64,000 nucleotides of DNA, from assembly GCF_000002075.1 (NCBI RefSeq), contig NW_004797276.1, forward strand, positions 2,177,950-2,241,949, written 5' to 3'. A program made the position numbers and the translations under genes. The stretch comes from Aplysia californica. Taxonomy: Eukaryota. Numbering within the stretch: position 1 is the stretch's first letter; the number at the start of each line of letters is the position of its first letter. The notes beneath the pieces were generated by a model that saw nothing but the letters and a program-made list of their open reading frames with translations, ran no database searches and was not told where the DNA came from. Of this stretch, positions 20,570 through 21,338 are shown piece by piece.

Positions 20570-21338
20570 ATGAATGGTGAATCAGCTAACAAGTTCATCT
20601 CTGCTTTGGTGAAGTCACTTCAGACTCTGTGCCAGGGTTATGTGGAGTTCAATGATGGGATAGAAATAATCGGACATTTATACCTGAACATTGATAGTGG
20701 GTCTAGTTTTGACTACATAGTGAAAGAAAAGGTTTGCAAAAATGCTGAAAATTCCACTATATTTGTGAGCAAAAGTTATGCTGCTCAGACACCACCTGAT
20801 GAAGTGATAACTCGGAGAGATAAAGGTCAGTCAATGGGCAATGACCAAGGAGCAGACTTTGAGGATGCATCGATGTCTCCTACCGCAGGCACATCTCGGT
20901 TGCAATCAGCTATCACAAGCATCAGCAATGTTTTGTCTGGGGCCCAGGATAATCAGAAGTCTCGCCATATGTCCCTAGACCACTCCCACCTTCCATCAGC
21001 ACATTCTATTAAGAGAAAAAGAGAGCACAATGGTAATTATAGCGGAATGCATCCTCCATACAAGTACACCACTCTACAATCTTCATCATCATCTTCAGCC
21101 TATTTCAACAGTGCACCATCAAAACAAGCAGCAGACAGAAACCATTCTGAACAATTCAGCAGTTCATCCCATGCTGAGTTTTTCGGTGGTGACAGCAACC
21201 AAAGCTCAGGTATGGGCCCTGATGATGAGGATGATCTAGACTTAGATGTGACTTTTGTGAAAGAAGAATATTCAGAAAGTCAAAGAATCTCCAATCAAAG
21301 GGGGGTTTCAGCTGGTGCTGCTTCCAGACTCAGTCAAG
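20570..21338 (+). CDS. Gene B constant coding exon 1: unnamed N-terminal domain plus Ser-rich linker
   Basis: Acceptor tttttctccag| (exon starts 20552), CAGCAAC-ATG at 20570, 256 open codons, donor CAA G|gtagtt at 21338 (phase 1). N-terminus is homologous to gene A. Confidence 0.9.

Follow-up and report, generated by a model that had tools for sequence, protein, structure and literature searches.

Drosophila lola and mod(mdg4), and also broad, fruitless, tramtrack and pipsqueak, encode a common N-terminal domain and a disordered linker, to which one of many alternative 3′ exons is added. The lola locus yields 20 isoforms, 17 of them with zinc fingers, and mod(mdg4) yields at least 30, mostly with FLYWCH domains (PMC11426971). 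Their heads are BTB domains of the TTK type, which form hexamers, interact widely among paralogues and have been reported only from arthropods (PMC11426971). Here we describe gastropod genes that are built alike: one exon encodes the head domain, a long disordered linker follows, and an intron in phase 1 leads from this shared portion to one of many 3′ modules. This lola/mod(mdg4)-type architecture was found both in annotated isoforms and in the phase-1 acceptors of the DNA analysed. The tails are also of similar kinds, including zinc-finger pairs (many ending in C2HC), FLYWCH, psq-type HTH and BEN-like modules, and the isoform counts are similar.

The window, which is the whole stretch of 64,000 nucleotides analysed, comes from Aplysia californica and contains gene A (LOC101859451, RefSeq isoforms X2 and X3) and gene B (LOC101859211), both assigned by identical database records. 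The first coding exon of gene A (20552-21338, + strand) follows an acceptor AG at 20550-20551, begins 18 nt before the ATG at 20570 and encodes the domain and the disordered linker; a read contig starts at the same position, 20552. Three in-phase donors were identified in this exon, after 21032, 21209 and 21338, the first two from read joints and RefSeq X2 and X3 and the third from sequence and orthologues. The choice among them alters the linker length by up to 102 residues. Reads were mapped over window positions 17800-23000. One sequencing run (presumed RNA) gave contigs over 20552-21032 and 22469-22670 at a depth of about 1400, compared with about 0-30 in introns, and its reads contain two GT-AG joints connecting the donors after 21032 and 21209 to an exon at 22470. 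This common linker exon (22470-22670, + strand, 201 nt, phase 1 to phase 1, depth 1408) feeds the alternative 3′ modules. A few reads from each of three poly(A) RNA runs covered the gene A domain, exclusively on the + strand. Based on the read depth, the GT-AG joints and the stranded poly(A) reads, we conclude that the domain exon of gene A is transcribed and spliced. Upstream of gene A, many reads with loose ends on both strands pile up at 18660-18930, 19626-19685 and 20048-20081, which are probably dispersed repeats and not exons. The stranded + reads at 17974-18147 may mark the first untranslated exon of gene A; no joint from there to 20552 was seen in the mapped reads.

All 3′ modules seen in the window lie on the + strand, downstream of the common exons of gene A. 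Two alternative last exons with a C2H2 finger pair and a phase-1 acceptor (29330-29688 and 29906-30186) were predicted from sequence, and the former is 89% identical to the tail of the Candidula orthologue. A two-exon DUF3504/QRICH1-like module (45839-47668; Pfam E about 0.1, below the cut-off) and a BEN-like module (its first three exons, 58329-58423, 59794-59925 and 61892-62017, span 58329-62017) also have phase-1 acceptors and occur in RefSeq isoforms X3 and X2, respectively. The BEN-like module matches the BEN profile at an E of only 0.24 (below the Pfam cut-off) and is kept in Babylonia. A stretch of N is present in the window near 57.5-57.8 kb. As these exons are all on the coding strand, cis-splicing suffices to assemble the isoforms. 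Gene B is arranged head-to-head with gene A; its first coding exon, with domain and linker, is on the minus strand (1491-2028), and its zinc-finger exons are outside the window.

The initial annotation of this DNA had noted that A and B share about 34 of 63 residues in an N-terminal block and that their linkers are unalignable, and both statements were reproduced. We counted 34 identities over 63 aligned positions from F9 to Y70 of gene A, in an alignment of 65 columns of which two are gapped in both rows. This region corresponds to 20594-20779 in gene A and to 1980-1792 on the minus strand in gene B. The similarity is limited to the first 80 residues or so (BLASTP, 38 of 80 identical, E 2e-21). 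The block reaches a local score of 185, with 75 as the highest value among 2000 shuffles; for the linkers the score is 29 and the mean after shuffling 31.5. The block had been placed at 20570-20780 with about 65 residues; it is real and N-terminal, but slightly longer than proposed, spanning approximately residues 3-73 in gene A (20576-20788, + strand). Its homologue in gene B occupies 1783-1998 on the minus strand. F9, C21, G35, D42, E53, S67 and S69 are invariant, and C21 is the only invariant cysteine among a mean of 2.1 per domain. Gene A orthologues have 83% identity in the domain and 61% in the linker. In 284 of 294 proteins the domain begins in the first 30 residues, and it is present as a single copy per protein, with no protein among the 294 carrying two. 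We read the block as an independently folded domain of about 70 residues, encoded within one exon.

AlphaFold2, run with 125 aligned sequences, predicted a helix (residues 3-24) and three strands (30-41, 45-57 and 63-67) with a mean pLDDT of 86 and a pTM of 0.69, in agreement with the helix and hydrophobic strands that had been guessed from the letters. In the model of a full-length orthologue, the domain has a pLDDT of 87-93, and the linker is nearly all low-confidence coil, mostly below 60; all full-length proteins used in the analysis were database records. Sequence searches of Pfam, NCBIfam, PHROG and the PDB gave no credible match to the domain. The best Pfam matches were scattered over at most 5 of the 125 members and none was credible, so that the known-family match for which a check had been suggested did not turn up. 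Foldseek returned nothing at E≤0.001 from the PDB and BFVD. The best PDB match in VIA-align was a pseudopilin (GspI/XcpV; Z 6.0, rmsd 3.0, 70 aligned, 10% identity, within the background of <8), and other matches were PAS (Z 4.9), CbeA/YeeU-like proteins (Z 4.3-4.4 at 3-5% identity) and MEF2D (Z 3.5). The identities in the top rows were 2-12%, and every Z was within the stated background (<8). Pseudopilins, CbeA/YeeU and PAS fragments resemble the snail domain in the gross helix-plus-meander topology at Z 4-6, but differ from it in their background scores, the lack of sequence similarity and an unrelated biology. For the predicted model, the fold searches thus give no homologue, which does not by itself prove a new fold.

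Known heads of zinc-finger regulators were compared with the domain individually. The BTB core has about 95-120 residues with five helices and three short strands, and the TTK type carries an FxLRWN motif. PF00651 matched none of the 125 members at E≤0.5, a profile comparison by hhalign with 10 Aplysia BTB domains gave a probability of 0.5% over 10 columns, and no BTB structure appeared in the fold-search lists; the 70 modelled residues form a single helix and three long strands, and FxLRWN is absent from the domain consensus. ZAD (zf-AD) binds zinc through four cysteines in two CxxC pairs. The snail domain has no CxxC and is not ZAD, because C21 is its sole invariant cysteine. SCAN is an all-helical fold of about 85 residues; the model is mostly beta, which argues against both SCAN and KRAB, and no Pfam match to SCAN and no KRAB-A or other Pfam profile match to KRAB was obtained. 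The initial impression that the block is not recognisable as BTB, KRAB, SCAN or ZAD is borne out. The CbeA/YeeU antitoxin was also rejected, as PF06154 was unmatched in the genome and the structural match stays at Z 4.3-4.4 with 3-5% identity.

The Aplysia genome contains eight copies of the domain, of which four lie on this scaffold in an interval of 220 kb (2.18-2.40 Mb) and two are strongly diverged. A profile search of 1.84 billion representatives (50% clustering) found 432 proteins at E≤0.001 and 292 at 1e-10. The best 150 of the 432 were inspected, the remaining 282 being weaker. From these 150 and other records, the named matches are all gastropod and belong to 15 genera, namely Patella, Lottia, Haliotis, Pomacea, Babylonia, Nucella, Aplysia, Elysia, Biomphalaria, Bulinus, Physella, Lymnaea, Candidula, Bradybaena and Arion, which we take to span four subclasses. 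The lineage-specific nature that had been proposed for the domain holds among the best 150 of the 432 matches. In four close Atlas clusters, Mollusca is the commonest phylum and the head has no Pfam family. Viral and prokaryote contigs were searched and contained no relatives of the domain. A search with the two divergent paralogues, aimed at other molluscs, gave three matches only, the named one from Aplysia. Read in the genomic frame, these paralogues (23-32% identity) retain each of the seven invariant residues; in the RefSeq model of one of them, the last S-x-S motif is spliced out and no DNA-binding tail is recognised.

In the domain tree, gene A falls together with land-snail orthologues and one gene of Babylonia (support 89/78), and gene B with another Babylonia gene (89/96), at the limited resolution that few columns allow. 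A contig from another species also carries the head-to-head pair, separated by 30 kb, and in Bulinus (Btru_043709/043710) and Babylonia (LOC143293555/554) an A-type and a B-type gene bear neighbouring locus tags. A recent duplication is ruled out by the tree and the conserved linkage: A and B are old paralogues of different subfamilies, and A:B pairing cannot be assumed for this reason. Family members are clustered elsewhere too, with consecutive tags in Lottia (231650-231652) and near-consecutive ones in Bulinus and Babylonia. On an ENA-assembly contig (1-1291 and 16416-17213), a family member is preceded by a same-strand DUF3504 gene and followed by a zf-Tnp_2 frame, which may be further modules of neighbouring loci.

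The tails differ widely behind the shared heads. Among the sampled isoforms, LOC101845285 of Aplysia has 18 different tails after a common part of about 317 residues, and Physella and Patella have 16 each; annotated isoform numbering reaches X21 at one Aplysia locus and X37 in Physella. A C2H2- or C2HC-type motif is present in 155 of 231 distinct tails. When 44 of the other tails were compared with Pfam, CENP-B/psq-type HTH (8), FLYWCH (2), Tc5, BED, homeodomain and transposase zinc fingers were found, to which the window adds the BEN-like and DUF3504-like modules (below Pfam cut-offs). From the families to which they belong, we infer that the tails bind DNA. In Babylonia LOC143293555, 13 isoforms are identical over residues 1-441 and differ only in the last 43-92 residues. 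Their common part includes two BEN-like exons, 64-79% identical to 59794-59925 and 61892-62017 of the window, and the alternative exon seems to swap only the final helix of the BEN-like domain. If true, this would be a second tier of specificity switching. Around ten alternative exons of LOC101845285 and its Physella and Biomphalaria orthologues encode an atypical finger pair, whose first finger is of the CPVxxC form with HW and whose conserved tail closes on a DP-P motif; it has a weak zf-Di19 match only in Pfam and may be an unnamed zinc-finger subtype. RefSeq names of family members include 'zinc finger and BTB domain-containing protein 43/44', 'hypermethylated in cancer 2' and 'scratch 2'. 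The head is not BTB, and the misleading BTB names probably follow the finger match.

Judging from sequence and analogy, we consider it fairly probable that the domain is a protein-interaction head of gastropod multi-isoform DNA-binding proteins, and most likely an oligomerising one. With the faces assigned by sequence alternation, hydrophobic residues make up 96% of sheet face 1, and face 2 keeps I34 (93%), I50 (99%), V66 (94%), Y38 (59%) and C56 (61%); the hydrophobic arc of the helix is about 180-300 degrees. Oligomerisation is suggested because both faces are conservedly hydrophobic with a single helix to cover either, and also because the heads of the similarly built fly proteins oligomerise and tails of two fingers would benefit from added valency. 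The helix would cover one face of the three-strand sheet, and the leftover conserved hydrophobic surface would be buried by a second copy in a dimer or higher oligomer. Such self-association would produce mixed complexes among co-expressed isoforms of one locus; the mixing would follow from self-association alone, since one and the same domain heads every isoform of a locus. Mixed complexes could combine short modules of two fingers into longer or bridging units for DNA binding, which is what TTK-type BTB domains do for Lola and Mod(mdg4). Pairing across paralogues, for example A:B, would be a separate further step and is speculative. Against oligomerisation, the monomer already folds confidently (pTM 0.69), and covariation was uninformative (Neff 35, no signal of inter-subunit contacts).

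The exposed hydrophobic face would equally fit cofactor binding. A monomeric effector that brings in a conserved co-repressor or chromatin factor, in the manner of KRAB and TRIM28, is a less likely reading. The exposed face, together with conserved polar K15, Q18, D42, E53, S67 and S69, would then bind a partner outside the family. KRAB and FiNZ are N-terminal accessory domains and, to our knowledge, are not known as oligomerisation modules. The very high conservation across subfamilies, polar positions included, the confident monomer model and the precedent of KRAB and FiNZ (PMC10547256) would suit an effector. However, the tails usually have two fingers only, where added valency would help, and lola/mod(mdg4), the closest architectural parallel, has an oligomerising head; an effector role is also compatible with oligomerisation, since BTB domains do both. 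Obligate heterodimerisation, in which paralogues of different subfamilies such as A and B pair and homodimers are weak, appears improbable. The A/B linkage is kept in distant snails, but tandem origin and a shared promoter region account for it; the subfamily-specific residues persisting at helix positions 14, 16, 19 and 24 and the eight paralogues in one genome would also agree with pairing, but no complementary charge patterns were seen.

The transposase-type nature of many tails raises the question of whether the head is a remote member of a known fold family (a PAS-like fragment, pilin-like, CbeA/YeeU or the N-terminal part of a transposase), captured with transposon-type modules and functioning as that family does. 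We regard this as very improbable: the weak matches to pseudopilin (Z 6.0), PAS (Z 4.9) and YeeU/CbeA-like proteins (Z 4.4) all fall within the background (<8) with 2-12% identity in the top rows, Foldseek found nothing in the PDB or BFVD at E≤0.001, no viral or prokaryote relatives were found, and the only close Atlas structures are mollusc clusters, in spite of an Atlas feature match to CbeA (0.93, 160 shared features). Direct binding of nucleic acid by the domain, as an auxiliary DNA-binding unit of MADS-like or PC4-like type, is hardly credible. The helix-plus-hairpin topology, the weak MEF2D match (Z 3.5) and conserved K8, K15, K54 and K57 point that way, but acidic E26, E32, D42, D48 and E53 are conserved equally with no basic patch or extension, and each isoform already has a dedicated DNA-binding tail.

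The oligomerising head thus being our preferred reading, a wider proposal is offered tentatively: gastropods may have independently evolved the whole lola/mod(mdg4) system on an undescribed oligomerisation domain of new fold. Mixing of isoforms and paralogues from about eight loci with dozens of exchangeable, partly transposase-type exons could then form a combinatorial code for transcription or chromatin architecture, perhaps for neuronal cell identity in Aplysia. The kind of system is known from insects, and the proteins are in RefSeq under uninformative or misleading names; new are the head domain, non-homologous to BTB and unnamed, and the repetition of the design over several loci. A literature search that included the locus ids found no description of the domain; most subscription journals were outside its scope, and a prior mention is possible. 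If our reading is true, the domain would be a new entry beside BTB, ZAD, SCAN, KRAB and FiNZ among lineage-specific heads on zinc-finger regulators, and the lola/mod(mdg4) design would have arisen twice from unrelated parts. This would suggest that evolution has a general solution in coupling a shared interaction head to exchangeable DNA-binding exons, often of transposase type. Aplysia is a model of neurobiology, and Biomphalaria and Bulinus are host snails of schistosomes; the family is present in all three, and the domain is small and easily expressed.

Compared with known systems, the snail genes differ from lola and mod(mdg4) in the head, which is unrelated to BTB and comprises a single helix and three strands in about 70 residues, and in having several paralogous loci each with an exon array. 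Oligomerisation is proven for BTB heads, whereas for the snail head we only infer it. As with ZAD and SCAN proteins, a small lineage-restricted N-terminal domain in one exon is followed by a disordered linker and C-terminal zinc fingers, but the snail head has no four-cysteine zinc site and is not all-helical. The source of diversity also differs, being alternative last exons at about eight loci in snails and hundreds of genes with long finger arrays for ZAD and SCAN. FiNZ was unnamed until 2023 (PMC10547256). KRAB and FiNZ share with the snail head the position of a lineage-specific N-terminal accessory sequence on zinc-finger proteins; in contrast to them, the snail head is longer and predicted to be globular alpha/beta with no sequence match, and the snail tails have two or three fingers only, or non-finger modules.
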